A stretch of 64,000 bases of DNA from IMG/VR virus record IMGVR_UViG_3300042289_000986, positions 62,001-126,000 of that record; one strand, given 5' to 3'. The notes under the pieces are model-generated. The model saw only the letters and a list, made by a program, of their open reading frames with translations, did no database searches and was not told the DNA's origin. Every line of letters begins with the position of its first letter. The first letter of the stretch is position 1. Shown here piece by piece: positions 1-21,300 of the stretch. Position numbers and translations under genes: made by a program.

Positions 1-1523
1 ATGTAACAACATCTGATGGATTAAACGCATTAAGAGTTTTATCCCAAGATTTAGAATCTTCTGTTGATGATATCACCATTGGTGATAAAAATGGAAATCT
101 TGCATACGTTACCAATAGTGCATTAAATGTATTTGTAACCAATGGTATTAGTGCAGTTTCTCTTACAAATCAATTAACAGGTATTACTGTTTTAAATCCA
201 ATTACAGCAGTTAATGCTAATATAACAAACACAGTAGCAATTAGTACAACTCAAACTTTACCTATTTCTGGTTCAGTTACTGTTTTAAATCCCGTTACAC
301 AAGTTACTACATCCCAAGAACCTACTCAACTTGATGCCTTTGGAAGATTAAGAACATCTTCTCCCATGACTTTATTTGATTCAAGTCATAGATATAGAGA
401 TAATAATTTATGGTCTACATTATCAGCAAATAATGGTTCGGTTTCATTCAACGAATTACAGGGATTAATGGAGTTAAATGTCACCAATACGTCAGGGGCT
501 AGTGCAATAAGAGAAACAACAAAAGTGTTTTCCTATCAACCGGGTAAGTCATTGTTAGTCATGAACACCTTTGTCATGGCTCCTTCTACAAATAATTTAA
601 GACAAAGAGTAGGTTATTTTGGACAAGATAATGGTATCTATTTTCAACTAGATGATGGTGTAATGAGCTTTGTTGAAAGAACTTTAGTTAACGGTTCTCC
701 TTCTTCAGAAACTATAGTACCTAAATCAGCTTGGAATGGTGACAGATTAGATGGAACTGGACCTTCTGGATTTACTTTAGATATTACAAAAGCACAAATT
801 TTGTGGATGGATATTGAATGGCTTGGTTTAGGAACGGTAAGAACTGGGTTTGTTATCGATGGTAAATTTATTGTTTGTCATTCATTTCACCATGCTAACA
901 GAATTGCTTCAACTTATATTACTACAGCATCTTTGCCTCTGAGATATGAGATTGTTAATAAAGGAACTACAACAGGTGGTACTAAAACACTAAAACAAGT
1001 ATGTTCCACTGTAATATCAGAAGGTGGTTATGAATTGAGAGGTTTGCAACAGGCAGTATCTATTCCAATTAATGCAGCAAGAACCTTTGCGGCTACAAAT
1101 ACATATTATCCGATAATTTCAATTAAATTAAAAACAACTCCAGATAGACTCGATGCAATTATTATTTTAACGGCTTTATCAATTTTAGGAAAAGGAAATA
1201 ACATCAACTACAACTGGCAAGTAAAAGCAAGCGGAGATACATCAGGAGGAAGTTGGGTTGATGCTGGAGTTGATAGTGCAGTGCAATATAATATTACAGG
1301 AACAAGCTATGCGGGTGGAAGAATTTTAGCAAGTGGTTTCATAAATGCTTCTAATCAAGGTTCTCCGAATTTGGATATTCTTAAAGAAGCTTTGTTTAAA
1401 TTTCAATTAGAACGAAACAATTTAACGAAGACTCCTTTTGAATTAACTTTGGTTGCTGCATCAGATGCCACTAATAATGCTGGTATGTTTGCTTCAATGG
1501 ATTGGGAAGAGATTAGTAGATAA
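1..1523 (+). CDS. Virion structural protein, 5'-truncated by window edge (frame open from base 3, upstream of the track's ATG at 366)
   Basis: No stop in frame from 3 to 1523; Thr/Val/Asn-rich beta repeats, then DAFGRLRTSSPMTLFDS, a motif seen in aquatic myophage structural proteins. Confidence 0.6.
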   Translation, partial: VTTSDGLNALRVLSQDLESSVDDITIGDKNGNLAYVTNSALNVFVTNGISAVSLTNQLTGITVLNPITAVNANITNTVAISTTQTLPISGSVTVLNPVTQVTTSQEPTQLDAFGRLRTSSPMTLFDSSHRYRDNNLWSTLSANNGSVSFNELQGLMELNVTNTSGASAIRETTKVFSYQPGKSLLVMNTFVMAPSTNNLRQRVGYFGQDNGIYFQLDDGVMSFVERTLVNGSPSSETIVPKSAWNGDRLDGTGPSGFTLDITKAQILWMDIEWLGLGTVRTGFVIDGKFIVCHSFHHANRIASTYITTASLPLRYEIVNKGTTTGGTKTLKQVCSTVISEGGYELRGLQQAVSIPINAARTFAATNTYYPIISIKLKTTPDRLDAIIILTALSILGKGNNINYNWQVKASGDTSGGSWVDAGVDSAVQYNITGTSYAGGRILASGFINASNQGSPNLDILKEALFKFQLERNNLTKTPFELTLVAASDATNNAGMFASMDWEEISR

Positions 1524-1534
1524 TTTACTTTTTT

Positions 1535-2200
1535 ATGATTCTCTGTTTATCAGATATTCATTTAGGAAGTCCAATATGTCAGGCAGAATTGACATTAAAA
1601 ATATTAGAAGATTGCGAGTACGATAAACTTATAATTTGTGGTGATCTTTTAGATTCTTATAACATTCATAGACTTTGTAAAAAACAATGGAAAGTTTTAT
1701 CTGCCTTGAGGAAAATATCCAAAACTAAAGAGTGCATTTTCATTAAAGGAAATCACGATAAAAGTTTGGAAACCGTAAGTGCTTTGCTTGGTTTTGATTT
1801 TAAATTGGAACACATTGAAAAGATTGGTGGTAAAAAGTTTTATTTTGTTCATGGGGATAAATGGGATTATATAATTCAATTAAGACCATTGTTAACTGAA
1901 ATCGCATCGGGAATTTATTATTTTTTACAAAAAATAGATAAGACCCAAAAGTTTACAAGAAAATTAAAAAAGAAAATTAAAACTTGGAGATCATCTGCTG
2001 ATAAAGTTATGGAAAGAGTAGCTAATCACGGAAAAGATTTAAATTGTGATGTGGTTGTATTTGGACATACCCACATGCCAGAGCATAAAAACGTCAATGG
2101 AATAGAATGTGTTAATTTAGGTTCTCAGTGTGATCTACCAGTTACATACTGTAAAATAAGTAATAAAGGTAACATAACTTTAAAAAGTTTAGATAAATAG
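1535..2200 (+). CDS. Calcineurin-like metallophosphoesterase, LpxH (UDP-2,3-diacylglucosamine hydrolase)-like
   Basis: Motifs SDIHLG, GDLLD, GNHD, HGD, FGHTH, N(L)GS. Confidence 0.8.
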   Translation: MILCLSDIHLGSPICQAELTLKILEDCEYDKLIICGDLLDSYNIHRLCKKQWKVLSALRKISKTKECIFIKGNHDKSLETVSALLGFDFKLEHIEKIGGKKFYFVHGDKWDYIIQLRPLLTEIASGIYYFLQKIDKTQKFTRKLKKKIKTWRSSADKVMERVANHGKDLNCDVVVFGHTHMPEHKNVNGIECVNLGSQCDLPVTYCKISNKGNITLKSLDK

Positions 2201-2208: not shown

Positions 2209-3045
2209 ATGTTCGTAGGTATTTTAGCTTTAACCGCATTTATTATTGCTGGTGTGGCAGCATATTTTTCTGTTTATGGTATTGCTACACTCTATGCAGG
2301 AGCATTTATTTCTGTTCTTGTCATGGCAGGAGCTTTGGAAGTCGGTAAGCTTGTAGCAACAAGTTTTCTTTACCGATACTGGCACAAGACTAATCTGTTG
2401 TTAAAAACTTATATTCTTGTTGCCATTTTAACTCTGATGGGAATTACATCAATGGGTATATTTGGATTTTTGACATCAGCTTATCAAACAAGTCTTATAG
2501 AATATTCTCAAGCAGAAACACAACAAGAATTTTTGGTATCGCAAAAAGCGATACTTGAAAAAGAATTAGAGTCTTTGGCAATGCGTGTTGATACCTTAAA
2601 TCAATCTCGTCTCTCTCAAGAACAAAGACTCCCATCAATGTCTCGTAGATCAGCAGCACCTGTTTATGAAGATATTAAAAAGTCTGGAGAAGAAATTACA
2701 CAATCTAAAGGAAGAATGAATCAAATATTTGAAGAAATAAAAGCCCTTGATTTACAAACACTGGAAGCACAAAAACAAAGTGGTAAACAAAAAGATATTG
2801 GAACACTCAAATATGCAGCAGAACTTTTTGGAACAGATATCAATACAATTGTTAAGTGGTTCACACTTGCTATTATTGTTGTATTCGATCCTTTGGCTAT
2901 TGCTTTAGTTTTAGCTTATAACATAGCAGCAAATAAAAAATTTGATGAAGAGGAAATTGTAGTCGAAGATGAAGAAAAAGAAGTTAAATTAATAAGAAAA
3001 ATTAAAGAAAAAATTTTACCATCAACAGCAAAATATAGAAACTAA
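2209..3045 (+). CDS. Membrane protein with long coiled coil (conserved myophage protein)
   Basis: Three N-terminal TM helices, coiled coil, C-terminal TM with VFDPLA; TAAATA upstream. Confidence 0.6.
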   Translation: MFVGILALTAFIIAGVAAYFSVYGIATLYAGAFISVLVMAGALEVGKLVATSFLYRYWHKTNLLLKTYILVAILTLMGITSMGIFGFLTSAYQTSLIEYSQAETQQEFLVSQKAILEKELESLAMRVDTLNQSRLSQEQRLPSMSRRSAAPVYEDIKKSGEEITQSKGRMNQIFEEIKALDLQTLEAQKQSGKQKDIGTLKYAAELFGTDINTIVKWFTLAIIVVFDPLAIALVLAYNIAANKKFDEEEIVVEDEEKEVKLIRKIKEKILPSTAKYRN

Positions 3046-3046
3046 T

Positions 3047-3187
3047 ATGAAATATAGTAAAAATAGAAAATATAGAGATCAAGAAGTTATTCTTGAAAAA
3101 GAAATTAAAACAGTTAAAAAGAAAATTAAAAAGAAGACTTCTGTTTTAGATAAAGTTAAAAACTTTTTTAAAAAACTTTGGAAATAA
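3047..3187 (+). CDS. Small Lys-rich protein (46 aa, not in ORF track)
   Basis: ATG right after previous stop; MKYSKNRKYRDQEVILEKEIK...FFKKLWK. Confidence 0.45.
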   Translation: MKYSKNRKYRDQEVILEKEIKTVKKKIKKKTSVLDKVKNFFKKLWK

Positions 3188-3196
3188 TTTTGAAAG

Positions 3197-3653
3197 TGGA
3201 GGTGAGGAGAGTTGAACTCCTGTCCAAATAATCTAGGCTAAAAGGTCTACATGTTTGAGTGTCTTTAGCATTTCAGCCACCATACGGTAACGGAGACTTT
3301 AGGCTGCATAGTGACACTAACTGAGTTTATAGTCTGCCTGTAGACATTATCGCAATCTACATACGGTTGATATTTTGTTGTTACGTTAGAACTACCAACA
3401 ATCTAACAACCTCTGCTATCAATGATTCTTTAGAGGATCCAGAATCAAGGTTCTTAGGCGGCTAAGAGCATCTCTTCATCCGCATATGAGGCGAGAACCT
3501 CATCAGCGTTGTTGAAAATACTCTCGGCTTCTGCCAAGAGATCAGAAGTGAAATCTTCTGCATTTAGTTTTTTAATCGATTTTTTACGAGGCCATCGATT
3601 AACCTCGACATGCACTTTTAGTTTCAACTATCTGTCGAAACCAGTACACCCCC
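3197..3653 (-). ncRNA. ssrA: tmRNA (about 457 nt)
   Basis: 5' GGGGGTGTACTGGTTTCGAC; 3' GACAGGAGTTCAACTCTCCTCACCTCCA; acceptor stem with G3.U70; internal tag frame 3561-3454 ending LLAA-stop. Confidence 0.95.
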
Positions 3654-3654: not shown

Positions 3655-3669
3655 AATTTTCAAAGAACA
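3655..3669 (-). promoter_or_regulatory. boxA-like antitermination element upstream of tmRNA
   Basis: Minus strand TGTTCTTTGAAAATT immediately before the tmRNA 5' end. Confidence 0.6.
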
Positions 3670-3676
3670 GATCTAT

Positions 3677-4849
3677 TTAGTCAACCTTCAAAGTTTTACC
3701 CAATGAATTGATTGTGGCTTTTTTATTGGTAACCTTAACCAATTCAACGCCTGTGCTATCTTCAGAATAATTGACAATACAAAAACCATTTTGCCAATTT
3801 GCGCCTTTAACATAGGTAGGATTCAGTTTACATGCACATCCGATTTCATGGTTCTCAATAATTTCCATTGGACGAGAACCAATCTTTGGAATGGTTTGAT
3901 ATGTTGATCCCAAACGATGAGTATGGCTTGTAATAGTAGAAGCAAAATGTTTTTCAAAATTACCTCTAGCAGAGAAGCCACCATGCTTACGAACAATATC
4001 ACCATGATAAACAAACACGTTATTTGGCAACTCTACCAAAGAATCCATATCATCTGTAGCATCTACTAAACGAATTCTTGACCAATCAGCTTGAGGATGG
4101 AACACCTTCGTATATGAGAGATTCTCTGCAATTTGTGGAAGCTCTAAAAGTTGTTTGATATCATCACTGGCAGAAATGTATCTCCACCAACGACCTTCGA
4201 TACCATTACCTGAATGGTTTCCATTCGTTTCAAGAATCTCTGCTTTAAATGGTTCTGTAATATCATGAAGAATTTTGAGAAATTTATGATAAGCCTCAAT
4301 TTCATCATTGATACTATGACCATGACGAGCATCTTTAGAATACTTGCTAATAGAAAGAAGATCAACCGTATCACCATTAAGAATAATTCTTTCTGGTTTC
4401 ATTTCTTCGACAGCTTGAAGAAAGATGTTGATCGTATCCCAACACTCAAAACCAAAGTGAGTGTCACCAATAATCATTGTTGATTTGTTGGCAACCGAAT
4501 ATGTTTTAGGTTTTACTGGAGCAGGATATTGGACGTATTTAACATTTTCCAAAAACTCTTTCAAACGTTCTTGGCGGAAATCATTTTTGGTCATTCCTGC
4601 AAGATAAGGAGTTTCAAAAGATTCCGTAGTTTCTTCTTCAGTAATAATATTGATTGGGTTGTCATTCTCATCAAAAGAATTTTGAACTGTTGTCTTAACA
4701 GTAGTATTGCGGCGGCGACCTGTAACCCAATCGTGAATGGTTGATCTTGGAACGCCTAACAGTTCAGAAATTTCTGTTTTGGTTTTACCTCTTCCGTGAA
4801 GCTGTAAAACTTTTTTACGTTTAATATTTCGATCTGAATTTATATTCAT
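3677..4849 (-). CDS. N-terminal HTH fused to calcineurin-like metallophosphoesterase
   Basis: KTEISELLGVPRSTIHDW HTH; GDTH, GDTVD, GNH, HG, SHTH motifs. Confidence 0.8.
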   Translation of the reverse strand: MNINSDRNIKRKKVLQLHGRGKTKTEISELLGVPRSTIHDWVTGRRRNTTVKTTVQNSFDENDNPINIITEEETTESFETPYLAGMTKNDFRQERLKEFLENVKYVQYPAPVKPKTYSVANKSTMIIGDTHFGFECWDTINIFLQAVEEMKPERIILNGDTVDLLSISKYSKDARHGHSINDEIEAYHKFLKILHDITEPFKAEILETNGNHSGNGIEGRWWRYISASDDIKQLLELPQIAENLSYTKVFHPQADWSRIRLVDATDDMDSLVELPNNVFVYHGDIVRKHGGFSARGNFEKHFASTITSHTHRLGSTYQTIPKIGSRPMEIIENHEIGCACKLNPTYVKGANWQNGFCIVNYSEDSTGVELVKVTNKKATINSLGKTLKVD

Positions 4850-7236: not shown

Positions 7237-7307
7237 GCCTGGTTAGTTTAATGGTAAAACGGTTGATTTGTAATCATCTGACACCAGTTCGATTCTGGTA
7301 CTGGGCT
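7237..7307 (+). tRNA. tRNA-Thr(TGT)
   Basis: Acceptor GCCTGGT/ACTGGGC; anticodon loop TT-TGT-AA; TTCGATT T-loop. Confidence 0.9.
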
Positions 7308-7315
7308 TTTTAAAT

Positions 7316-7392
7316 TGCGGGATAGCAGTTCTGGTGAACTCAAGTGTCTCATAAGCACTTTTAGGTGGGTTCGATTCCCACTCCCGCTACCA
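7316..7392 (+). tRNA. tRNA-Met(CAT), initiator-like acceptor end
   Basis: Loop CT-CAT-AA; U1:U72 mismatch; encoded CCA. Confidence 0.88.
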
Positions 7393-7396
7393 ACTT

Positions 7397-7618
7397 ATGT
7401 ATGTACCATCTAAGCATTTTGAAAACCCTGAACAAGAAATAGTTTGTCTTTTAACAGGAGAATCTTATGTTTATTTAGAAGGCGATGATTTATCTCTAAT
7501 AGATCCAAAATATCATGAAGGATCTATAACAGAGCTACCAAAAAGATTTTTTCAACATCCTACTGGTATTTCAAAAGGAAATGGACAAGTTAGAATTTTA
7601 ATGCCCAAGATCCAATAA
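7397..7618 (+). CDS. Hypothetical protein
   Basis: ORF within tRNA region. Confidence 0.45.
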   Translation: MYVPSKHFENPEQEIVCLLTGESYVYLEGDDLSLIDPKYHEGSITELPKRFFQHPTGISKGNGQVRILMPKIQ

Positions 7619-7685
7619 TGTGACGAAATCTTAACTTGTTAGTTGGCACAAATGGTGCTAAATAAATGTGTGAAAGGAGGTATAC

Positions 7686-7847
7686 ATGGAAAAACATTAT
7701 CAAACACACCAATTGGGGATTGTTTTTGGTCCTTATGGTTCAGTTGGATATGTAGGAACAATACAGCGAGAAGATTTGAAAGAAATCGCTCAGATTTTTT
7801 TCGGATTGTTTCGTTGGGTTAAAACAACTTTAGCTTCATTGTTCTAA
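7686..7847 (+). CDS. 53-aa peptide with strong Shine-Dalgarno (not in ORF track)
   Basis: AAAGGAGGT-atac-ATG; MEKHYQTHQLGIVFGPYGSVGYVG...IFFGLFRWVKTTLASLF; followed by a terminator. Confidence 0.6.
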   Translation: MEKHYQTHQLGIVFGPYGSVGYVGTIQREDLKEIAQIFFGLFRWVKTTLASLF

Positions 7848-7857
7848 TCATAAACAC

Positions 7858-7885
7858 AACCCCTCTCGAAAGAGAGGGGTTTTTT
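7858..7885 (+). terminator. Intrinsic terminator
   Basis: AACCCCTCTC-GAAA-GAGAGGGGTT then T-run. Confidence 0.85.
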
Positions 7886-7921
7886 ATTTGACTTTTAAAA
7901 TATTTTTAGTATATTCTTATT

Positions 7922-8083
7922 ATGGACATCACATTTTTACTTCTTCGTTGGTTGGCAATTTTTACTGGATATTTTTTAATTGGATTAAGTATTGGTGCAG
8001 TATTATCTTTCATTTGGATTTCTTGGCGAGAAAAAAGAGCCAATAAACAATTCATGAAAGAAATTCTAAGTAAAAGAAAATAA
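7922..8083 (+). CDS. 53-aa single-TM membrane peptide (not in track)
   Basis: TTGACT..TATATT promoter ending 6 nt before ATG; hydrophobic N-half, basic tail. Confidence 0.55.
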   Translation: MDITFLLLRWLAIFTGYFLIGLSIGAVLSFIWISWREKRANKQFMKEILSKRK

Positions 8084-8090
8084 TTTTTAT

Positions 8091-8162
8091 GTCGCCATCG
8101 TCTAACGGTTAGGACACATGGTTTTCATCCATGTAATCGGAGTTCGATTCTCCGTGGCGATG
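8091..8162 (+). tRNA. tRNA-Glu(TTC)
   Basis: Anticodon arm CATGG-TT-TTC-AT-CCATG. Confidence 0.92.
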
Positions 8163-8167
8163 CTTTT

Positions 8168-8241
8168 GCGGAATTAGTTTAATGGTAAAACTGGACTCTT
8201 CCAAAGTCAGGACGAGGGTTCGATTCCCTCATTCCGCACCA
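8168..8241 (+). tRNA. tRNA-Gly(TCC)
   Basis: Acceptor GCGGAAT/ATTCCGC; loop CT-TCC-AA; CCA encoded. Confidence 0.92.
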
Positions 8242-8275
8242 CTTGACTTCTTTGTTTTGAAAATAAATTAATCAT

Positions 8276-8491
8276 ATGATTAATGCAGAAGTAAGAATAC
8301 CAAAACGAGGAGATGCAAAACTTAATTTAGATAGAGCACTTCAAAGACTAAAAACAAAATTAATGATCGAAGGAACTATGGATACTGTTCGATCAAAAAG
8401 AGCTTTTGAAACACCTAAAGAAAGAAGTGAAAGAAAACTTAAACAAAGATTAAAAATGATCAAGAAAAAATCTTTGACAAAAAGTAGATAA
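8276..8491 (+). CDS. rpsU: 30S ribosomal protein bS21
   Basis: V-x-I...LDRALQRLKTK..EG.M..VRSKRAFETPKERSERK pattern; 71 aa, basic. Confidence 0.88.
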   Translation: MINAEVRIPKRGDAKLNLDRALQRLKTKLMIEGTMDTVRSKRAFETPKERSERKLKQRLKMIKKKSLTKSR

Positions 8492-8509
8492 ACGTCTATA
8501 AATGATAAT

Positions 8510-9064
8510 GTGAAAACATTAATCATTCACCCAAAAGATACAAGTACTGTTTTTTTAGAACCAATCTACGAAAAGATTGATAACAAAACAGTTATCCAAA
8601 AAGATTGTTCCTTTGAACAACTTATTAATCTCATTGAAACACACGATAGAATTATGATGATGGGTCATGGTTCTCCTGATGGATTATTTTCTATTGGTAA
8701 TTTTGATGAGGGGTATGTTATTGATAAAAATATTGTGGATTTTTTAAAAAAGAAAAAAGAATGTTTTTATCTTTGGTGCAACGCTGATAAATTTGTTGAA
8801 AAATATCAATTGAATGGATTTTATTCAGGAATGTTTATTTCCGAAGTTAATGAGGCAAATTTTTGTAATGTGAATACCGATCAAAAATTGGTTAATGAAT
8901 CAAATTATTCTTTTTCTAAAATTGTTTCTAAATGGGCAAATTATGATATGAAAAACTTGTATGATAATGTAAAGATGGAATATAGCAAACTTGCAGAGTT
9001 TAATAATGTAGCTCTTTATAATTTAAAAAGACTTTATTATCAAACTAGCATAAATATTATTTGA
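8510..9064 (+). CDS. Hypothetical protein (caspase/CHAT-like GHG motif)
   Basis: IMMMGHGSPDG and LWC; TTGACA promoter upstream. Confidence 0.45.
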   Translation: MKTLIIHPKDTSTVFLEPIYEKIDNKTVIQKDCSFEQLINLIETHDRIMMMGHGSPDGLFSIGNFDEGYVIDKNIVDFLKKKKECFYLWCNADKFVEKYQLNGFYSGMFISEVNEANFCNVNTDQKLVNESNYSFSKIVSKWANYDMKNLYDNVKMEYSKLAEFNNVALYNLKRLYYQTSINII

Positions 9065-9097
9065 CAAAAGGAAAGATCTTTGATATGTTAGTAATAC

Positions 9098-9400
9098 GAT
9101 TTGGTGGCAGTTATAACCAAATCAGGATAAAAATTTTTGCTTGTTGGTGAGTTGGGGTTTTTATCTGAGCTAGGGGAGCCAAGCTGCGGTAAGCTATGAT
9201 CCTATGCATTTATACAATACAAGCTATGGACGAAGTTGTGTTCTGCGGATTGCGGAGCCTTCGTTGAGTAGTGGGACAAATTCTAGAATAAAACCCACTA
9301 AACACCAATTCGGGTTAATCTTGTAAGAGGAGCCGACTTTCCGTGGTTGTATAAACATGGCTGAGATTAGTCCTGAATCGTCGCGGGTAAACGATTCACA
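9098..9400 (+). ncRNA. Unassigned structured ncRNA (about 300 nt)
   Basis: Own promoter TTGACA(9061)-N17-TATGTT; GC-rich; no ORF; multiple nested helices. Confidence 0.7.
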
Positions 9401-9466
9401 TTTTCAGTAAATATTATTGTTATTTTTCTCGCGGAAACTTAGAGGTTTTTGCGAAAGGAGATAACA

Positions 9467-9571
9467 ATGACATTAATAATAGGAACAATAGTCTTAGCAT
9501 TTAACATTAAACTTGCATGTTTAGGTTATTTGGTAATGATTACAGAAATGTTTGGCAGACACACTCGATAA
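9467..9571 (+). CDS. 34-aa hydrophobic peptide with strong SD (not in track)
   Basis: AAAGGAG-ataaca-ATG; MTLIIGTIVLAFNIKLACLGYLVMITEMFGRHTR. Confidence 0.55.
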   Translation: MTLIIGTIVLAFNIKLACLGYLVMITEMFGRHTR

Positions 9572-9596
9572 TGAATGATTCTGACTAACGTTTTTG

Positions 9597-9630
9597 AAAC
9601 AAGGGTAGAGAAATCTACCCTTGTTTTTTT
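9597..9630 (+). terminator. Intrinsic terminator
   Basis: AAACAAGGGTAGA-GAAA-TCTACCCTTGTTT then T-run. Confidence 0.85.
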
Positions 9631-9657
9631 ATAACTTAATGATATATTGTTTACATG

Positions 9658-9744
9658 GGTGCGATGGCTGAGTGGTCTAAAGCAGGAGTTTACTAAACTC
9701 TCGAAGTTTAATCGCTTCCGTGGGTTCGAATCCTACTCGCACCG
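9658..9744 (+). tRNA. tRNA-Ser(ACT)
   Basis: Acceptor GGTGCGA/TCGCACC, G73, long variable arm, loop TT-ACT-AA. Confidence 0.88.
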
Positions 9745-9750
9745 TTTTTT

Positions 9751-10164
9751 ATGGAAATAACAGAATACGATCCGTTTAAAAAATCAATTGTTCCTTATGG
9801 CTTAGATAGGGGTGCTCCTAAATTTGATATAATTGAAACAAAAACTAAAAAAGATCAGCACTACAATCTTGCAGTGCAACAAGCACAAAAAGAATTTGAA
9901 AATCTTAAACAAATAGCTGATGTAATTAATAAACAAGCTCAACAAATAAAAGAGCGTTTAGAAATTACAGAACTTGTATATAACGCCGAACGTACCTTTA
10001 CCCCTGTTGTTGGAGCCAACTACTGGCTTATAAAAGATACAAAAAAAAATAATATAAAAATTGTTGTTTTGGGTCCGAAAGAATGGGCTACAAAACATCC
10101 AGAAAATTATGAATATATTTCAGAAGTTCAATTTTTAGCTAATGGACTTTGGGAAAAGTTGTGA
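9751..10164 (+). CDS. DUF2452-like protein
   Basis: PYG..RGAPKF, coiled coil, F.PVVG.NYWL, W at C-end. Confidence 0.6.
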   Translation: MEITEYDPFKKSIVPYGLDRGAPKFDIIETKTKKDQHYNLAVQQAQKEFENLKQIADVINKQAQQIKERLEITELVYNAERTFTPVVGANYWLIKDTKKNNIKIVVLGPKEWATKHPENYEYISEVQFLANGLWEKL

Positions 10165-10394
10165 TAATATATCAATATGAAAAAGTATGCTATACATATT
10201 AAATTCAAAGGACGTAATTTTAAATTAAACATTTTACCAAAAGATGATGATAGATTTGATTTGGAAATGGAATTTAAAGGTTCTCTATCTGGAGAAGATT
10301 TTCAAGATTTAAGAAAATATCTTGTTGATGAAGGATATGTAGATGCTGCCAGAAGTTGGATAGAAGGAGATAGTTATCTGGCAAATTAATTTTT

Positions 10395-10485
10395 GGGTAG
10401 ATGGCTGAGTTGGTCTAAGGCGTCCGACTTGAAATCGGAAGTGGGGGAAACTTCACCGTGGGTTCGAATCCTACTCTACCCGCCA
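10395..10485 (+). tRNA. tRNA-Ser(TGA)
   Basis: TCCGA-CT-TGA-AA-TCGGA; long V-arm; GCCA end. Confidence 0.93.
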
Positions 10486-10490
10486 TTTAA

Positions 10491-10564
10491 GGAGTCATAG
10501 CTCAATTGGTCAGAGCACCGCCCTGTCACGGCGGGGGTTGCGAGTTCGAGCCTCGTTGACTCCG
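10491..10564 (+). tRNA. tRNA-Asp(GTC)
   Basis: CCGCC-CT-GTC-AC-GGCGG. Confidence 0.93.
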
Positions 10565-10787
10565 TTTTTGAATAAGTATAACATATGTTTGAAAGCGGAA
10601 ACTCATTTGAAGATAAAACATCTGATGCTTTTATAAATGAAGCAATAAAAGAAACGTTAGATAATTTAAAAATTAACCCACCAAAATTCCAAGCGGTTTT
10701 TGATGACGGTTCAACTGTAGATTTTGAAATTTACGAAGAAGCTATGGGTTTTTTACATAAAAACCCAAACTGTAAAGTATTTGTAAA

Positions 10788-11219
10788 ATGAAATTTAAAA
10801 TTTATTTTGAATCAAAAAATTTTAATTTAAATGTTTATTATAAACTTTTAAATAATTTTTTGAATTCACAAAAAAACTGGAACTTAAAAAAAATTGAAAA
10901 TGATCCATATAACCAAATGGAAATTGTTGATGAGAATGGAAAAAGGTATGGGAAAATTGAAAGAGATTATGATCCTGAAACAAAAACATTATATTTAAAT
11001 CATATCGGTGTGGGGTTTGATGAAAACGGTCAAAGAATGAAAGGTTTGGGGTTGGTTGATTTAATTTATAATTTTGAAAAACAAATCGTGCAAATGTATG
11101 GAATTGAAAACGTTTGCACAGAACCAGTAAATGATATTACAGATAAAAAATTCAAAGAAATATACCAAGATTACAAAATAGAGCAAAAAGACAATTATAT
11201 TTGCGCCTCGATTAAATAA
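10788..11219 (+). CDS. Possible GNAT-fold protein
   Basis: LYLNHIGV..QRMKGLGL resembles acetyl-CoA motif A; leader MKFKIYFES. Confidence 0.4.
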   Translation: MKFKIYFESKNFNLNVYYKLLNNFLNSQKNWNLKKIENDPYNQMEIVDENGKRYGKIERDYDPETKTLYLNHIGVGFDENGQRMKGLGLVDLIYNFEKQIVQMYGIENVCTEPVNDITDKKFKEIYQDYKIEQKDNYICASIK

Positions 11220-11228
11220 GTATAAGAT

Positions 11229-11957
11229 ATGAGAAAAGATGATATTAGCATTAACGAAGCTTACTTAAAAGTTTATCAAAATTTAGAAGAAGGCATGTTT
11301 GATGTCGCTAAAGCCAAAATTGGTGGTGCAATTAAAGGTATTGCGCCTGGTAAAAGATTAGGCGCAATGGCAGCAAAAGGATTAGGAAAAGCTGCTGGTA
11401 TGCTGAGTCCAACAGCAGGAAAAATGTTACAACAAACAGGTGAGCGTTTACAAAAATCTGCATCAGAAGCTGGTATGGCTGGTAAAATAAACTCAATCAT
11501 GAAATCTCATACAGGCAGCATTCAAAAGATTGCTCAAGAAGTCATTAATGATTTAAACAAATTAGATTTAAATCCTGAAAATCTTACAGCCGAACAATTT
11601 GCTTCCCAAATAACACAAGATTTCACATCTTATTTAAGCTCACAGCTTCCAGAATCGCAAGTTGATGTTTCTGGTATTGGAATTGGATCAACAGTTAAAG
11701 ATAAAGAAGGAAACGCTTATCGTTATACTTCTCCTTCAGAAGTTGATCCAGCAACAGGCAAACTTAAACCAGCAACTGATAGTGCCAACAAAGAAGGTGC
11801 TAAATGGTATGAACTGAGTGGTGGTGGCAAATCAGCATATGAGATTGCTGGGGACAGCGATGAAATGCAAAAGAAAATTTCTATTGCTTTCAAAAAACAA
11901 GGCCAATCTCAGCCAGAAACACCAGAAGAAGAAAAACCAAAAATGCCCGAATTTTAA
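11229..11957 (+). CDS. Putative head-internal protein with KDxxxxxEAY leader
   Basis: MRKDDISINEAYLKVYQNLEE-G; Gly/Ala/Lys-rich helix; TAAGTA 6 nt upstream. Confidence 0.6.
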   Translation: MRKDDISINEAYLKVYQNLEEGMFDVAKAKIGGAIKGIAPGKRLGAMAAKGLGKAAGMLSPTAGKMLQQTGERLQKSASEAGMAGKINSIMKSHTGSIQKIAQEVINDLNKLDLNPENLTAEQFASQITQDFTSYLSSQLPESQVDVSGIGIGSTVKDKEGNAYRYTSPSEVDPATGKLKPATDSANKEGAKWYELSGGGKSAYEIAGDSDEMQKKISIAFKKQGQSQPETPEEEKPKMPEF

Positions 11958-11999
11958 TTTATCTTGCTTTCTTTGATTTTTCTAGTAAGATAATAATAT

Positions 12000-12076
12000 C
12001 GGGATGTGGCTCAATTTGGTAGAGCATCTGCTTTGGGAGCAGAGGGTTGCAGGTTCAAATCCTGTCATCCCGACCA
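12000..12076 (+). tRNA. tRNA-Pro(TGG)
   Basis: CGGGATG/CATCCCG; loop TT-TGG-GA; ACCA. Confidence 0.94.
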
Positions 12077-12170
12077 TTTATTCTTGACAATATTTTGTTT
12101 TTATAATATTGTCTATGGATGAAAAATGAAGTTATTTATGATTTAAGAACTTAAAAATGTAACAAAATCT

Positions 12171-12821
12171 ATGTTAATAAAACATTACATCAAAGAAATA
12201 AACTCTGATATTTTTGCGGTTGTTATTAAAAACAAATATGATCGTGCCATGCTTTTTTGTCGCGCCCAAGAATATTATGAAAGTCCAAGTCCTAAGTTTC
12301 GTGGAAAACAATTTTCTATTTGGGACTATATGAAATGGTATGATGAACAACATGGAAGAGGATTTAGTTATGCAAATGATTGGTCTGGTTTCAACATTCC
12401 TTTGAGACAAATAAACGATTGTTATAACAAATTAAACAAGATAGAGTCTCCTTATGATAAACTAATGTATGATATTTTGGCTGTTTTGAATTTAAAATAT
12501 CTTGCGACAAATGAATCATACGTGATTGGTTGTGGTGACACAAAAGGTGATATCTTTAAACATGAAGTCTGTCATGGTCTTTATTACACCAATAAAGAAT
12601 ACAAAAAGAAAATGGATGCTTTGACTAAAGGACTTCCAAAAAAATATTACGAAGCATTCAAAAAAAATATTTTAAAAATGGGATATGCCGCAAAAGTCGT
12701 TGATGATGAGATACAAGCATATCTTCAATATGGATATGAAAATGAAGATTTTGGAAAAGGGGTTGACATTAGTGTTCGTATCGAATATAGTAGTCTTTAT
12801 AAACAACAATCAAAATTATGA
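12171..12821 (+). CDS. Hypothetical protein with HExxH (zincin-like) motif
   Basis: FKHEVCHGLY; downstream DEIQAY. Confidence 0.5.
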   Translation: MLIKHYIKEINSDIFAVVIKNKYDRAMLFCRAQEYYESPSPKFRGKQFSIWDYMKWYDEQHGRGFSYANDWSGFNIPLRQINDCYNKLNKIESPYDKLMYDILAVLNLKYLATNESYVIGCGDTKGDIFKHEVCHGLYYTNKEYKKKMDALTKGLPKKYYEAFKKNILKMGYAAKVVDDEIQAYLQYGYENEDFGKGVDISVRIEYSSLYKQQSKL

Positions 12822-15300
12822 AAGCAAAACATCAATTCAAATATACATACGACGAATTTTGTGAAAACTTTTCACCAGTTGAAGTCATTTTTGATATACC
12901 AACAGGAGAAGTAACTATTACTCAAATGCTTTGGAATTTTGAGTGTTACTTGAAAGCTTGTGGCTTTGTCTTTGATGGACATTTGGAAGTTGTACCAGAA
13001 AGTGGTTATGATGTCATCGATGATACAGACTATTGTTGTATGGGTGATACTGATGGTTTAGAAGATGAACAATATATTATACCTCCAACAGTTAAATCTC
13101 CTTCTTATTGGGATAATCAACCGTCAAGCATTTGTTCTTCTGATAAACACAACATAACAGCGGAAGATCCTAAAAAGTTTTTTCCTCAACATGATAGCGG
13201 TCTTTCTACTACTTCTAGTTCTTTAGATAATGAGTGGACTAAAGCAGAAAAGAAACTCAAAGAATGGAATGAGGGAATTGCTAAACTTGATAACGAACAA
13301 AAAGAGAAAGCTAATGAAGATGCTCGTAAAATGTCTGATCTTCATTACGAAGCCACAAAAGAAGTGGTTAAGAATAAATGGGTTCATGGTATGTGCAATC
13401 CACCTTCACCTGATTGGAAAAAGAATAAATGAAGAAACCTACACAAAAACAAAAGATCGAAATGTATGAAAAATTCTTACATAAGATCAATATGTGTGTA
13501 ATGTGTTGTAATGATACAGGAGTTAGAGAACTTGTACACAATGCAGATGATTGGTCTTATATGCATCGTGTAGGAAACGGAGAACCATCTGAAAGAGAAC
13601 AACAAAGATTGATTACAAAAGCATTTTGGCAACTTTGCGATACTCCAGAATCAGATAAAGAAGTCGAAGAAAGACAAAGAATATATACTGAAAAGAAAAA
13701 AGAAAGAGAAGAAGCTGCTATAAATTTATGAAAAAGAAAAATAATAAATTCCAATACAAACCATATCCATCAACGGATGTAAGATCACCATATTATGATT
13801 CAAAATCAACAATTACGGAGGAACATTACACACTAGACGGAGATCATCCCGAAGATCGAATCTATAGAGATAAAGAATTTATCAACAGACTTCAATCACA
13901 TATTGATATAGTATATGATATTTTAGCTATGGACTTAAAACTTAACGAAAAGGGCAAAGAATGGCTTTTTGATTTTGTTTATAACGAAGAAGAAAATATT
14001 GAGTTTGAAGACTTCTTGGCAAAGTATAAGGTCAAGTATAAAGATCTAGTTACTTCAAATAGCTGGTATTATAATCAATAAAATATGATAACAAAACTAG
14101 TAGCATTATTCGCAATAGTCACCGCATCTATTGGATTGAGTGTAGCAACTCTCATTTATGGATGGGGATTAGAACCTAAAAGCTGGACCGCAATTATATT
14201 CTTTGGTATAGTTGGTCAAGTTATTGTAAGCAGTCTTTATAGAAAAATTATGGAAGATGACAAATGAAATACAGAATTAAAGAAGAAATAAAGATGGGTA
14301 AACATTACTTTTACCCTCAATATAAAAAATTCCTATTCTGGAAGAATATGACTGAACGTGATGTTAAGGATGTAGTTGTATACCCTCACCTAAAAGGAGC
14401 TAAAGATCATATTGAAATCTTTAAAGAGAGACTAAACAAGAAAAAGAAGCTTGATAGTTACAAACAAGTATTGTATCATTCCTATATATCATAGATGAAA
14501 TATAAATTTGTAGAAACTCAAGGTTGCACGGCATTTGGCTTCACTGTCAATGATGAAGACCTTGCTAATGTTTCCAAAGAGAAACAAAAAGAAATTATTG
14601 ATTATCTTTGTGAAAAAATGAAAGAAGAAATTGATAAAGGAACTGTTTTGTTTTCAGATATTGTTGGAGTTTTTCAAGAAACGGATCATGGTTCTGAAAA
14701 AGAACCTTGCGATCAATGCTATGATACTGTAAGCTGGACTATATGGGAGATTTAACTATGAATACAAATGAATATGTAAAAATTCTAGAAGAAGAATGTG
14801 GCAAAAACCAAGCACACAAGAAAAAAAGTATCAAAAAAAGTACAGGTATAAATGCTCTTTACATACCAGAAAAACCAAAGCCAGATTACAGTTGGACGAT
14901 TAAAGATCGTTTAAAAAATACTTTTATAATTCTTAATAACCGTTGGGTGTTTTTGAAAAACTACAACCCTCTGGATTTTAGATCTTATGAAGAAGAATAT
15001 AACCCATATGGGTTTGATAAGATATATACTAAATTTCACAGAACATCGACTCCATTAACTCGTTTTAAACTTTTTTGGGGTGAATTTGAAACTACTTTAA
15101 AAAATATTAAAGATGGTTTTTTATATACCCCACTCGCTGTTAAACATTATCAAAAAAATAAAGAAAGAATATCTTGGTTTGAAGAAAATCTTTCAAAGAT
15201 GTTTGCCGATAAGTTAGATGTTGATGTCAGAAAAGTATTGCATAAACATGGGTATGATCTTGACGGACAAGGTAGAATTTGTTATAAAGTAAAAGAATGA
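12818..15300 (+). other. Run of seven small abutting hypothetical ORFs (12818, 13429, 13728, 14085, 14264, 14495, 14743)
   Basis: Overlapping or abutting start/stop codons on the same strand, typical of phage early genes. Confidence 0.6.
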
Positions 15301-15467
15301 AAATTATAATTTTATCTTTACTTTTAACTGGATGCACAACGCTTACAGATAAAATGGTAAAACCAGCTATTAATGAAGATAACTATTGGAAAACTCCTTG
15401 TATTTGGGATGGAACTATTTTAAAAAAACCTTGGCTCAAAAAAGATATAACTACAAATGAGCGATAA
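15297..15467 (+). CDS. Small lipoprotein (56 aa, not in track)
   Basis: MKIIILSLLLTG-C lipobox; ATGA overlap with the upstream gene. Confidence 0.6.
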   Translation: MKIIILSLLLTGCTTLTDKMVKPAINEDNYWKTPCIWDGTILKKPWLKKDITTNER

Positions 15468-15588
15468 ATTAAAACAAATTATGGAAGAAATCAGTAAATT
15501 AACAATTACTGAACTTAATGAACTTATTAAAAGTTTAGAACCTATCTTTACACCAGAAAATAAAACAGATGAACACGGAAATAATTGA
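15457..15588 (+). CDS. 43-aa protein resembling the N-terminal dimerisation domain of ribosomal protein bL12 (not in track)
   Basis: MSDKLKQIMEEISKLTITELNELIKSLEPIF fits the bL12 NTD pattern I-x-E-x-I-x-x-L-T-x-x-E-L-x-E-L-x-K-x-L-E-x-x-F. Confidence 0.7.
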   Translation: MSDKLKQIMEEISKLTITELNELIKSLEPIFTPENKTDEHGNN

Positions 15589-15823
15589 CGAACAATATAA
15601 AACACATCTTGTTAAAGAGTATGAGCGTCTTAAAGATGAAGTTGAATTATACAAAAAAGTTAATCTTAGTTTAAGGAAAGAACTTACGATGTGTGAAAAA
15701 CTTATTGAATTAAACATAAAAGATCTTTGGAACATAGCCGATCAAAGAGATTGGTATTATGAAGAATATCAAAAATTAAAAAGAAAAGAGGAGCTTAAAC
15801 AAGCTGCTTGGAGAAGAAAATAG
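15569..15823 (+). CDS. Coiled-coil hypothetical protein
   Basis: Heptad-rich ORF. Confidence 0.5.
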   Translation: MNTEIIDEQYKTHLVKEYERLKDEVELYKKVNLSLRKELTMCEKLIELNIKDLWNIADQRDWYYEEYQKLKRKEELKQAAWRRK

Positions 15824-15828
15824 ATTGA

Positions 15829-16203
15829 ATGGATTTATTATTTGTTTACGGTACTTTAATAGAAAATAAAAAAACAAAAATACATAAACTTTTAAACAAA
15901 AATAGTTTGTATATATCTAAAGCTGTTTTTCAAGGTAAACTTTATGATACAGGAAAATATCCAGCAGCAATAAAATCTAATAAAAAAAATGACATGGTTA
16001 TCGGAAATATAATAAAAATATTAGATTTAGAAATATTAAAAAAAATAGACGAATATGAAGGATTAGAGTATAAAAGAAATATAACGACATTAGTAGCTAA
16101 TAAAAAAAATATAAAAGCTTGGATTTATCTTTATTGTAAATCGATTGAGAAACATAAAAGAATAATATCGGGTAATTGGTTAAAATATAAAAAAATAGAT
16201 TGA
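15829..16203 (+). CDS. Gamma-glutamylcyclotransferase (AIG2-like) family protein
   Basis: LFVYGTL, GKLY..G.YP, DEYEG..YKR, AWIY. Confidence 0.85.
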   Translation: MDLLFVYGTLIENKKTKIHKLLNKNSLYISKAVFQGKLYDTGKYPAAIKSNKKNDMVIGNIIKILDLEILKKIDEYEGLEYKRNITTLVANKKNIKAWIYLYCKSIEKHKRIISGNWLKYKKID

Positions 16204-16246
16204 CTGATTAAATATATCTGGTAAATTAGATATAGTTCTTTGAAAA
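16200..16246 (+). promoter_or_regulatory. Sigma70-like promoter followed by boxA-like element
   Basis: TTGACT-N16-TAAATT then GTTCTTTGAAAA (16235-16246). Confidence 0.6.
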
Positions 16247-16257
16247 ATTTAAAAAAG

Positions 16258-16597
16258 TTTAATGTTGGCTAGTCGAACCAGCATTAAAAATCCTGATGCG
16301 AAACCCATCAGGTAACAAGGTATGCAACTCTACCTCTCTATACAACGGATACGTGTCCGTGTTCTGATCAGACATATAGAGTCCCATAGTGGATAACTTA
16401 AAAGTGAAAAAAAAGAGTGTAGGTTCTGGGTAAACCGAAGCTAGATTGGCTAAAACCCTTGTCCCGAAAGGGGTAAAGGTTCTGTGTTCTGATTCTAAGC
16501 ATTATGGCCCAATCGAACAACGATTGGCTTAGATAATGCCAGCAGATTAAGGCGCAACTTAATCGTCAGTCTGGTCCTGTTTGCGACAAAAACACCA
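16258..16597 (+). ncRNA. Unassigned structured ncRNA, 5' domain/RNA A (about 340 nt)
   Basis: GC-rich, no ORF, more than 8 helices with multibranch closure, ends ACCA + U-rich spacer. Confidence 0.7.
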
Positions 16598-16607
16598 ATT
16601 TTTATAA

Positions 16608-16789
16608 TCCGAGAATCCTAACGAGATTCTAGTCAGTACCCACTGATGAATAGAAGCTGTTCGTTACAGTAATAAGGGGGATGGTTGCCGTGACTCGCAT
16701 ACGGTGTGCGTAAGTTGACTCGTCTGAAAAGATAGGGAGTCCGTGCTTGATTCCGAAAGGAAAATGATGGTATGTAAAGACAGCCGAAA
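16608..16789 (+). ncRNA. Unassigned structured ncRNA, 3' domain/RNA B (about 180 nt)
   Basis: Hairpins AGAATC/GATTCT, TCAGT/ACTGA, GCTGT/ACAGT, GACTC/GAGTC; two GAAA tetraloops. Confidence 0.65.
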
Positions 16790-16814
16790 TTTTTTAATTC
16801 TTTTATAATTTAAT

Positions 16815-16888
16815 TCCTTGGTGGGCTAACGGTAAGCCAACAAACTGTTAATTTGTTCATCATGCTGGTTCGAATCCAGCCCAAGGAG
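16815..16888 (+). tRNA. tRNA-Asn(GTT)
   Basis: TCCTTGG/CCAAGGA; ACAAA-CT-GTT-AA-TTTGT. Confidence 0.92.
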
Positions 16889-16970
16889 CTTTTATTAAAT
16901 GTATAAAAATGGTGTTATACTAAGCCAAACCATTATATAAAATGTTACATATAATATGTAAGTATTATAT

Positions 16971-17525
16971 ATGAGTATAAATGCAGATCGTGTTAAAGCT
17001 TGGAGAAAAGATACTAAAAATTTAATTGTTGAAGGGTTTGGAGGAAAATGTTGTATATGTGGTTATGATAAATGTGAAGAAGCTTTTGATATACACCATA
17101 TAGATCCTACTCAAAAGACATTATCTTTTGGAGGAATAAGAGCTAATCCTAAACAATGGAAAATTTTATTAAAAGAGTTAGAAAATTGCGTTTTATTGTG
17201 TGCTAACTGTCACAGAGAATATCATGCAGGTAAAACTAACATCCCAAAAAATATTCCAAAATTTGTAGATTTAAAAGAAAAAAGAAAAATAAAAACATAT
17301 TGTCCAATTTGTAATAAGCAAAAAGCAAATTATCTTATAACTTGTTCAAAAACTTGTGCTGCAAAAAGAAAATCTCAAATCGAATGGGATAATTTTGATT
17401 TATATGATTTACACGTAATTCAAAAATTAAGTAATCTTAAAATAGGAAAAATAGTTGGTGCTTCTGATGTTGCAGTTATAAAAAGATTAAAAAAATTAAA
17501 AATTTATCAACTTCAAAATAATTAG
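16971..17525 (+). CDS. HNH endonuclease with Zn fingers and C-terminal HTH
   Basis: CCICG..FDIHHIDP..CVLLCANCHREYH; CPIC..CSKTC. Confidence 0.85.
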   Translation: MSINADRVKAWRKDTKNLIVEGFGGKCCICGYDKCEEAFDIHHIDPTQKTLSFGGIRANPKQWKILLKELENCVLLCANCHREYHAGKTNIPKNIPKFVDLKEKRKIKTYCPICNKQKANYLITCSKTCAAKRKSQIEWDNFDLYDLHVIQKLSNLKIGKIVGASDVAVIKRLKKLKIYQLQNN

Positions 17526-17540
17526 TGTATAATTACTATT

Positions 17541-17660
17541 ATGAAAAAACTATTATATACTATTATCTTTGTTAGTATTTGTTTACTTGTTTCTGGATGT
17601 TATAGCACAAAATCTATGGGCGATTCAGAAAAAGCAGACAAATATCTTTTTATCTATTAA
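17541..17660 (+). CDS. 39-aa lipoprotein (not in track)
   Basis: MKKLLYTIIFVSICLLVSG-C; TATAAT 7 nt upstream. Confidence 0.55.
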   Translation: MKKLLYTIIFVSICLLVSGCYSTKSMGDSEKADKYLFIY

Positions 17661-17666
17661 CTTAAA

Positions 17667-17918
17667 TTATTTTTGATTACAACTATCTAAAAGTTCTTTA
17701 TAAACTCTGTTTATATTTTCCATAGCTTGACAGAGCATAGATATGGAACTTGGATGATTAATAGCATTAGAATATTCTTTTATTTCTTCAGCATTTGCTG
17801 AAATGGTCATTCTTAATCTAATTTCTTTAGGTGATATAGAATTTTTTTTATTTGAGTCGCAACAAGAAGCAACTGTTTCATATAATTTTTCTAAACTGGT
17901 TTGGTCTTTTTTCGCCAT
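17667..17918 (-). CDS. Small protein with KDQ leader
   Basis: MAKKDQTSLEKLYE; TAAATA 5 nt upstream. Confidence 0.55.
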   Translation of the reverse strand: MAKKDQTSLEKLYETVASCCDSNKKNSISPKEIRLRMTISANAEEIKEYSNAINHPSSISMLCQAMENINRVYKELLDSCNQK

Positions 17919-17926
17919 AATAATAT

Positions 17927-18493: not shown

Positions 18494-18689
18494 TTTAATA
18501 CTTATTTTCTTATAGACAAAAAGCCAAGTTGTGATAAAATAAAAAAAATGAAAAAGTACTGCATATTTCCTGATGAAACTAAAATAGAACTTCATTCAAT
18601 TTTAGATGTAACAGATACACAAACATATATCTGTTATTATGATGAAAATCTTCCACAAACACTTTGGGTTCCGAATGATTTTTTGAGCA

Positions 18690-19703: not shown

Positions 19704-19704
19704 A

Positions 19705-20196: not shown

Positions 20197-20231
20197 TATG
20201 ATATATTTACTCCAAATTTAATCAATTTAAT

Positions 20232-20444
20232 ATGATAAATATGAATATAGTGAACGTGGCAGATACTTCTTTATATAAAGAATTCTTAGCAATGAGAGAA
20301 GAAGTCATGAAACACAAGTGGTATGAATCCGAAAAAGCTGGATATGATATCGGCTTCGCAAGAGCAGTGATTGATTGGACAATGAGGTTTAAAACTCAGT
20401 GGATTAAAAATAGAAAAAAAAAAATTAAGATTCTTTGTATCTAG
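20232..20444 (+). CDS. DUF4032-like small protein
   Basis: SLYKEFLAMREEVMKHKWYESEKAGYDIGF..AVIDW. Confidence 0.7.
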   Translation: MINMNIVNVADTSLYKEFLAMREEVMKHKWYESEKAGYDIGFARAVIDWTMRFKTQWIKNRKKKIKILCI

Positions 20445-20700: not shown

Positions 20701-20759
20701 TATTTAATATTTACAAAAAATACTTGTATCTTTTTAAAAATATGCCATAATTATATTCT

Positions 20760-21287: not shown

Positions 21288-21300
21288 TTAAAGTAAATCA

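Follow-up and report, generated by a model that had tools for sequence, protein, structure and literature searches.

The 64,000-nt stretch of DNA analysed here (positions 62,001 to 126,000 of IMG/VR record IMGVR_UViG_3300042289_000986, hereafter the window) carries a tmRNA gene on its minus strand at 3194/3196-3653, which both ARAGORN and the Rfam model RF00023 (138.4 bits against a gathering score of 47, E 4e-54, model positions 1-374) identify as a complete one-piece tmRNA. The gene lies in a virus genome of 211,587 bp with direct terminal repeats, rated complete, that has 32% G+C and encodes 20 tRNAs. The window itself holds a tail sheath gene, a large terminase gene, a ribonucleotide reductase, and a T4 Rnl1-like RNA ligase, and one virion protein is 67% identical to proteins of T4-like cyanophages. 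The tmRNA is therefore phage-borne, and the phage is a myovirus. Four near-identical phage contigs carry it in the same position next to the same HTH-metallophosphoesterase gene. The habitat is lake water, as 14 DNA runs hold at least 93% of the sampled words. The coordinates of the individual features are given in the table.

Features of the phage tmRNA gene (window coordinates, all on the minus strand; RNA numbering from G1).
Window position	Feature	Support
3197..3653	One-piece tmRNA gene, 457 nt, from G1 (3653) to discriminator A (3197); CCA not encoded, next bases CTT (3196-3194)	Rfam RF00023; ARAGORN; RNA-library contigs from 4 runs cover only 3196-3644
3647..3653	5' strand of the acceptor stem (RNA 1-7), pairs with 3198-3204, includes G3 of the G3.U70 alanine identity pair	Helix 1: 99% of cells paired; G.U at the third pair in 31 of 31 sequences; compensatory changes at 4 pairs
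3198..3204	3' strand of the acceptor stem (RNA 450-456)	As for the 5' strand
3205..3221	T-arm of the tRNA-like domain (RNA 433-449)	Helix 17: 96% paired; 4 of 5 pairs with changes on both sides
3574..3607	Pseudoknot PK1 (RNA 47-80): stem 1, 47-51 with 63-67; stem 2, 54-60 with 74-80	Helices 7-9: 88-98% paired; 10 of 12 pairs with compensatory changes
3562..3573	12-nt single-stranded spacer between PK1 and the resume codon, U at -5 and A at -4	T88, A89, and A90 invariant in 31 sequences; Rfam alignment puts the consensus resume GCA here
3457..3561	Tag reading frame, 35 codons from resume codon GCA (3561-3559) to GCC (3459-3457)	pN/pS 0.42-0.51 in frame against 1.06-1.88 out of frame; gaps in multiples of 3; all 96 unique tag DNAs 31-35 codons; RNA-library differences at 3460, 3466, and 3550 are synonymous third-position changes
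3502..3540	Conserved core of the tag, codons 8-20 (LLAEAE-S-IFNNAD)	Invariant in one of the alignments (A3); pS 0.60, pN 0.074, ratio 0.12 in loci found without using this motif; highest-pLDDT part of the AlphaFold2 model
3457..3480	C-terminal degron-like end, codons 28-35 (DEEMLLAA)	...LAA-type end in nearly all 68 peptides, preceding residues variable
3454..3456	Stop codon TAA of the tag frame	Sequence
3410..3447	Pseudoknot PK2 (RNA 207-244)	Helices 10-11: 84-85% paired; 9 of 12 pairs with compensatory changes
3375..3407	Tentative extra pseudoknot-like element between PK2 and PK3 (RNA 247-279), specific to the window's subclade	Read from the sequence; only 39-52% paired across the whole family because the region is variable
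3261..3360	PK3 hairpin (RNA 294-314) and PK4 (RNA 339-393)	Rfam alignment; 56-69% paired across the family; region replaced in some relatives

To assess the RNA structure, we drew it from the window sequence and counted it on an alignment of 31 family members (A2). In this alignment, 81.4% of cells form standard pairs, compared to 69.7% in shuffles (0 of 500 as high) and 40-52% when partners are slid, and the covariation score is 0.298 against 0.135 in shuffles. Compensatory changes are also found in helix 2, in addition to the acceptor stem, both PK1 stems, PK2, and the T-arm. PK3 and PK4 are present in the window but variable across the family. The region after PK2 differs among subclades. 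In the window this region seems to hold an additional pseudoknot-like element, which, together with the 75 extra coding nucleotides, would account for the unusual length of the RNA. Although CCA is not encoded in the window, about half of the 31 aligned relatives do encode it, and one RNA-library contig ends at C3196. A scan for sigma-70 promoters and terminators around the gene returned no more sites than in shuffled sequence.

The start of the tag requires closer inspection, as ARAGORN reports a tag of only 9 residues (ADEEMLLAA, starting at GCG 3483), corresponding to the last 9 codons of the frame that the sequence-only reading had proposed to begin at GCA 3561. That frame reads exactly as proposed and is preceded by AACTAAAT. 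In relatives with tags of 31-32 residues, ARAGORN calls the whole tag from the equivalent codon, whereas in relatives with 33-35 residues it falls back to shortened in-frame starts, and we therefore treat the short call as what looks like a length limit of the program. The short start lies about 90 nt beyond PK1 and has C instead of U at -5. Furthermore, the longer frame behaves as a coding sequence from its first codons. Third-position entropy is 35, compared to 14 and 12 at positions 1 and 2, and pN/pS is 0.42 for the seven codons upstream of the core, 0.50 for the five codons after it, and 0.51 for the last five, three segments that are not fixed by the search pattern. Of 82 alignment gaps inside the frame, 78 are 3, 6, 9, or 12 nt long and the other four are a stop-codon alignment effect, while 1-nt and 2-nt gaps dominate outside the frame. 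A resume codon further downstream, one of two findings named beforehand as speaking against the sequence-only reading, is thus not supported. The observation of a phage tmRNA of 457 nt with a 35-codon tag and no encoded CCA is confirmed, and the absence of smpB noted for the window holds for the whole 211,587-bp genome (PF01668).

The tag belongs to a family of related phage sequences. A degenerate pattern for the end of the tag retrieved relatives with the same internal motif, and a pattern for this internal motif found 73 IMG/VR loci and 111 metagenome stretches. Together these give 96 distinct tag DNAs and 68 distinct peptides, every one of them 31-35 residues long. The consensus consists of an ordinary-looking start (A-E/D-D-N-T-S-D), a near-invariant core (L/I-L-A-E-A-E-x-I-F-N-N-A-D) followed by E-F/V-L, and a run of acidic residues leading to a variable end (YALAA 18, MLLAA 11, YLLAA 9, ELLAA 4, YELAA 4, and others). 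As the core was the search pattern, its invariance in this set is partly built in. However, a search with a motif from the RNA body, independent of the tag, returned 14 readable tags, all of 33-35 residues, of which 13 had the core or IFNNAS and one had a different amphipathic sequence. The low pN/pS ratio of the core comes from the nine distinct core DNAs found without using the core, for which the other frames give 1.9-2.4. Thus, the core is the most strongly constrained part of the peptide and the degron-like end the least.

AlphaFold2 with 25 family tags predicts helices at residues 2-17 and 19-34, with a mean pLDDT of 84 that rises to 95 over the core and falls to 62 at the end. Hydrophobic residues recur every 3-4 positions, the hydrophobic moment is 0.42 (p about 0.02 against shuffles), and the net charge is -10. 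The tag matches no Pfam family at E up to 10, and a profile of 25 tags searched against PDB sequences gave only a marginal match to a TPR helix of BepA (E 0.13-1.2), which we treat as chance similarity between helices. A search of the tag against the six frames of the phage's own genome revealed no second copy or mimic (best E 0.3). Blastn of the tmRNA and tblastn of the tag against GenBank phages found nothing, and we found no description of this family or its core motif in the searchable literature.

The RNA appears to be expressed. In four metatranscriptome runs from four studies (three freshwater, one estuary), assembled contigs cover the predicted RNA but nothing in 3000-3190 or 3656-4200, which includes the protein gene directly upstream, and sequencing adapters abut at 3196/3197 and at 3644. 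The longest piece spans 3206-3644 with 8 differences, so that this evidence comes from assembled contigs of close relatives, about 98% identical, and not from raw reads of this phage.

Host tmRNAs with the same long tag would have been the other finding to speak against the sequence-only reading, and no bacterial tmRNA with this tag was encountered in the genomes examined. A GTDB-wide scan for the EEMLLAA end found five Opitutae tmRNAs of 353-355 nt with the 10-residue tag GNNEEMLLAA, one Anoxychlamydiales tmRNA with a tag of about 10 residues, and one Cardinium tmRNA with 24 residues, none of which has the core. Of 151 sampled Verrucomicrobiota genomes, 137 have a tmRNA of 345-404 nt, and the 50 tags that we read, including those of all the longest RNAs, are 8-20 residues long and mostly 9. 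The core pattern, searched in sampled genomes of three phyla rather than in all of GTDB, occurs in 0 of 1,203 genomes (0 of 401 in each of three samples drawn from the phyla of a Sphingomonas, a Ferruginibacter, and an Opitutae genome). The largest metagenome contigs carrying it are 215, 121, and 95 kb, which are phage-sized. Although the Opitutae tmRNAs share their last seven tag residues with the phage tag, their loci have 59-71% G+C against 32% for the phage. They are thus unlikely hosts, the shared ending may be convergent, and the hint at Verrucomicrobiota in the sequence-only reading is weak. With no host identified, the absence of the long tag from the host rests on sampling and not on a direct comparison of the host's own tag, SmpB, and proteases.

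Profile searches of the phage genome found no SmpB, ClpP, Lon (Lon_C), SspB, or CCA-adding enzyme (PolyA_pol, PF01743). Nor is any gene consistently found next to the tmRNA in the family. Neighbourhoods vary, with the best cluster covering only 18 of 63 loci, and the annotated neighbours are an RNA ligase, which is the best conserved neighbour and lies upstream in 15 of 63 loci, and an HNH endonuclease.

We consider it somewhat more likely than not that this is a working tmRNA whose additional helix is a protein-binding element that sets or speeds the fate of tagged chains. What the analysis demonstrates is the tmRNA architecture, the coverage of the predicted RNA but not its flanks by RNA-library contigs, which points to an abundant discrete RNA, and a 35-codon frame that has been under purifying selection as a peptide along its whole length in about a hundred related phage sequences. 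The function itself is inferred. As the phage has no SmpB, no CCA-adding enzyme, and no Clp or Lon protease, the RNA would have to be processed, given CCA, charged with alanine (G3.U70), and delivered to stalled ribosomes by host RNase P, CCA-adding enzyme, AlaRS, EF-Tu, and SmpB, and it would keep ribosomes recycling during infection. Whatever happens to tagged proteins would likewise rely on host factors. Each rescued nascent chain would then receive a 36-residue appendage composed of a short N-terminal piece like ordinary tags (A-E/D-D-N-T), the family-specific acidic amphipathic helix with its core, and a variable ...LAA-type end that host ClpXP should recognise. The helix could be an adaptor or protease-docking site, like the SspB-binding half of the E. 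coli tag. The N-terminus A-E-D-(N/F)-T is only loosely similar to the AANDENY-like adaptor site. The helix could also be a second degron rich in hydrophobic and aromatic residues, like the long Lon-directed Mycoplasma tag, to which the resemblance is limited to length and I/F/Y/L content. The interpretation given in the sequence-only reading is therefore supported in part: the phage origin, the resume codon, and the retention of an ...LAA end preceded by a predicted helical, acidic extension hold, but that the extension alters adaptor or protease routing remains a hypothesis, as purifying selection shows that the peptide matters but not what it does.

Other explanations fit the data less well. 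That the real tag is the short one reported by ARAGORN, with the upstream 26 codons being untranslated RNA that merely happens to be open, is very unlikely despite the ordinary length such a tag ending in LLAA would have, given the position of the short start, the behaviour of the program in relatives, and the coding constraint and gap pattern across the frame. It is also unlikely that the extension is kept for the RNA, as a structural element or spacer of the mRNA-like domain, with the peptide having no role of its own beyond the ...LAA end. Codons 8-14 can form an 8-bp RNA hairpin with a tetraloop (3521-3540), and tmRNA reading frames are partly structured, so some constraint could act on the RNA. 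However, variation is concentrated at third positions and is synonymous, amino-acid identity is preserved across many different codon choices, the off-frame controls show no such constraint, and the third-position pair of the hairpin, read from alignment A2, is kept in only some relatives. An inactive relic, or a decoy that only titrates host SmpB, as proposed for the mycobacteriophage DS6A molecule consisting of little more than a tRNA-like domain (PMC4131195), would agree with the missing CCA and smpB, but is hardly compatible with the full-length architecture with compensatory changes, the purifying selection on the frame, the apparent expression, and the many relatives that encode CCA.

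A tag that is not mainly a degradation signal is possible, although we regard it as less likely than a docking site or second degron. The helix might be a handle recognised by a phage-encoded or host factor that sequesters, relocates, or reuses tagged chains, or a competitive inhibitor or decoy that saturates a host protease or adaptor during infection. Phages often inhibit host proteases, with T4 PinA and lambda CIII (an amphipathic helix) as examples, and the core is far more conserved than the degron-like end and was not found in the sampled bacteria. In addition, other unrelated phages, namely Bxz1 and the Cellulophaga phages phi14:2 and Calle_1, have long tags whose ends are not ...LAA. 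Conversely, the ...LAA-type end retained in nearly all 68 peptides argues that ClpXP recognition still matters, and no candidate partner gene was found near the tmRNA. More speculatively, the conserved acidic helix may be a phage-invented functional peptide module that gives every rescued chain a fate that the host's own tag does not, be it docking to a particular host or phage factor or blocking a host protease or adaptor. In this tentative view, the long helical tags of the Bxz1 group and of the Cellulophaga phages phi14:2 and Calle_1 would be parallel solutions to the same problem, and re-tagging of the stalled proteome would be a general phage strategy, overlooked in part because ARAGORN shortens tags above about 32 codons.

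tmRNA tags are usually treated as short, host-specific degradation signals, and phage tmRNAs as borrowed copies that keep ribosomes free. Here, a large group of abundant lake phages has kept a helical insert of 20-25 residues under strong purifying selection, while the part that looks like the degron is free to vary. This implies that the tag peptide carries information of value to the phage, and the extension probably does something beyond marking proteins for destruction. Such a phage-specific, strongly conserved peptide module inside a tmRNA tag is unexpected. In practical terms, the usual annotation program appears to under-report tag length above about 32 codons, so that long phage tags may be missed systematically, and a compact, portable, two-part tag could be useful as a tunable degradation or capture tag.

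Neither phage tmRNAs nor long tags are new as such. The Bxz1 group and phage G are listed in PMC4131195, about 2.3% of phage genomes had a tmRNA in PMC9004378, and huge phages carry them too (PMC7162821). A review gives 8-35 residues as the known range of tag lengths (PMC8012679), placing this tag at the top of the range and not beyond it. Like the bacterial one-piece tmRNA (e.g. E. coli), the phage RNA has a tRNA-like domain with G3.U70, PK1 followed by a short spacer and an alanine resume codon, a tag ending in ...LAA, and further pseudoknots, and it would likewise depend on SmpB. It differs in its length (457 nt against about 350-400), in its 35 codons against about 10, in being carried by a phage without SmpB, in the conserved, predicted helical core inserted between the N-terminal and C-terminal parts of an otherwise ordinary-looking tag, and possibly in the extra pseudoknot-like element. 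The 27-residue Mycoplasma/Mesoplasma tag, also enriched in hydrophobic and aromatic residues, is thought to have evolved for recognition by Lon and shows that extra tag length can carry recognition information for another protease (PMC8403727). However, it is cellular, evolved in bacteria that lack ClpXP, and has no sequence similarity to the phage tag, in which an ...LAA end is kept as well. The marine myophages Melnitz, HTVC008M, and Mosig, T4-like aquatic myophages of plankton, also carry tmRNA genes, with proposed roles in keeping the hijacked translation apparatus running or recycling amino acids (PMC9004378). Those are circularly permuted two-piece RNAs of alphaproteobacterial type, some with a glutamine riboswitch, for which no long conserved tag has been reported.

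Long tags are not a general property of phage tmRNAs, as by ARAGORN's calls EFDG1 has 10 residues, Jay2Jay 11, phage G 13, and phiL47 16. Still, they do recur. Mycobacteriophage Bxz1 (NC_004687: 100059-100495), a soil actinobacteriophage, has a one-piece tmRNA of 435 nt with a strongly acidic 25-residue tag, in which an AEIEAFF stretch resembles the AEAEYIF of the core described here, and both tags begin with an A-x-D-T-like N-terminus. The RNAs show no detectable sequence relation, and the Bxz1 tag ends in ...ALV and has no amphipathic moment (0.09). This resemblance may be chance. The two unrelated Cellulophaga phages phi14:2 and Calle_1 have frames that would give tags of probably 38 and 30 residues from a GGA codon in the same UUUAAAC context, while ARAGORN prints 11 and 22 residues for them, and these two share an A-N-M-x-x-V-x-x-I-L-N stretch.

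Across the loci compared, ARAGORN calls the full tag when it has 32 codons or fewer and a shortened in-frame start when it has 33-35. Long tmRNA tags are therefore likely to be under-reported in phage and metagenome annotation that relies on this program. In two unrelated Cellulophaga phages, phi14:2 and Calle_1, the tmRNA frames, read from a GGA codon in a UUUAAAC context, would give tags of 38 and 30 residues, respectively, although ARAGORN prints only 11 and 22 residues. The two tags read in this way share an ANM..V..ILN stretch. This may be a second case of long helical phage tags. In addition, the tmRNA of Mycobacterium phage Bxz1 has a strongly acidic tag of 25 residues, whose AEIEAFF stretch and A-T-D-T-D start loosely resemble the AEAEYIF core and the A-E-D-N-T start of the family studied here. 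In contrast to the ...LAA end of this family, the Bxz1 tag ends in ...ALV, and the resemblance may be due to chance.

Variability is also found within the family, where some divergent members keep the length of the tag but not its core. Locus L106 has a 33-residue tag with a different amphipathic sequence, whereas loci L012 and L014 (46-51% G+C) have a 31-residue tag that lacks IFNNAD but ends in EEMLLAA. Within the tag frame of the phage itself, we found an 8-bp hairpin with an AGAA loop over codons 8-14 (L-L-A-E-A-E-S). The codons for L-A-E-A-E are inherently self-complementary, and the pairing is kept in only some relatives. Furthermore, in two metatranscriptomes a variant contig replaces 113 nt of the PK3 region with 116 unrelated nt. 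The part of the RNA after PK2 is swapped among close relatives, while the tag and PK1 stay the same.

Coordinates of the tmRNA-associated features and of other genes in the window and at the compared loci.
Feature	Sequence	Coordinates	Strand
Tag calls by ARAGORN	window; loci L008-L105 of relatives	window 3454-3483	
tmRNA of Cellulophaga phage phi14:2	locus L173 (NC_021806)	L173:1501-1970 (NC_021806:4031-4500)	
tmRNA of Cellulophaga phage Calle_1	locus L287	L287:701-1060	
tmRNA of Mycobacterium phage Bxz1	locus L163 (NC_004687)	L163:1501-1935 (NC_004687:100059-100495)	
Divergent family member, 33-residue tag	locus L106	~9256-9282 region	
Divergent family member, 31-residue tag	locus L012	9782-10208	
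Divergent family member, 31-residue tag	locus L014	6619-7045	
Hairpin inside the tag frame	window	3521-3540	-
Region replaced in variant contigs (PK3 region)	window	3291-3405	
RNA-repair-type genes (two metallophosphoesterases, Rnl1-like RNA ligase; RNA ligase of relatives)	window; locus L046	window 1535-2200, 3677-4849, 29728-30816; L046:2613-3626	+, -, + (window)
14 tRNA genes	window	7237-22242	+
Adenylosuccinate-synthetase-like protein	window	18690-19703	+
Virion structural protein (PHROG 1645)	window	366-1523	+

RNA-repair-type genes cluster with the tmRNA and tRNA region. These comprise two metallophosphoesterases, one of which is fused to an HTH domain and ends 24 nt upstream of the tmRNA, and an Rnl1-like RNA ligase. 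In relatives, an RNA ligase (PF09414 + PF21189) lies upstream of the tmRNA in 15 of 63 loci. Of the 20 tRNA genes in the genome, the 14 that lie in the window include a tRNA-Ser with anticodon ACU and a tRNA-Ile with anticodon UAU, which are unusual anticodons, and some of these genes encode CCA while others do not.

The window also encodes a 337-aa protein that, judged by sequence alone, is adenylosuccinate-synthetase-like (Pfam Adenylsucc_synt, 279 bits; PHROG 1211, 241 bits) and is shorter than cellular PurA. Phage homologues of this kind (PurZ) make 2-aminoadenine DNA, and a similar role for the protein found here would be suggested by analogy only. Finally, a virion structural protein is 64-67% identical to proteins of T4-like cyanomyophages and also of the podophage Puniceispirillum phage HMO-2011, and appears to be encoded by a gene that moves between very different phages.
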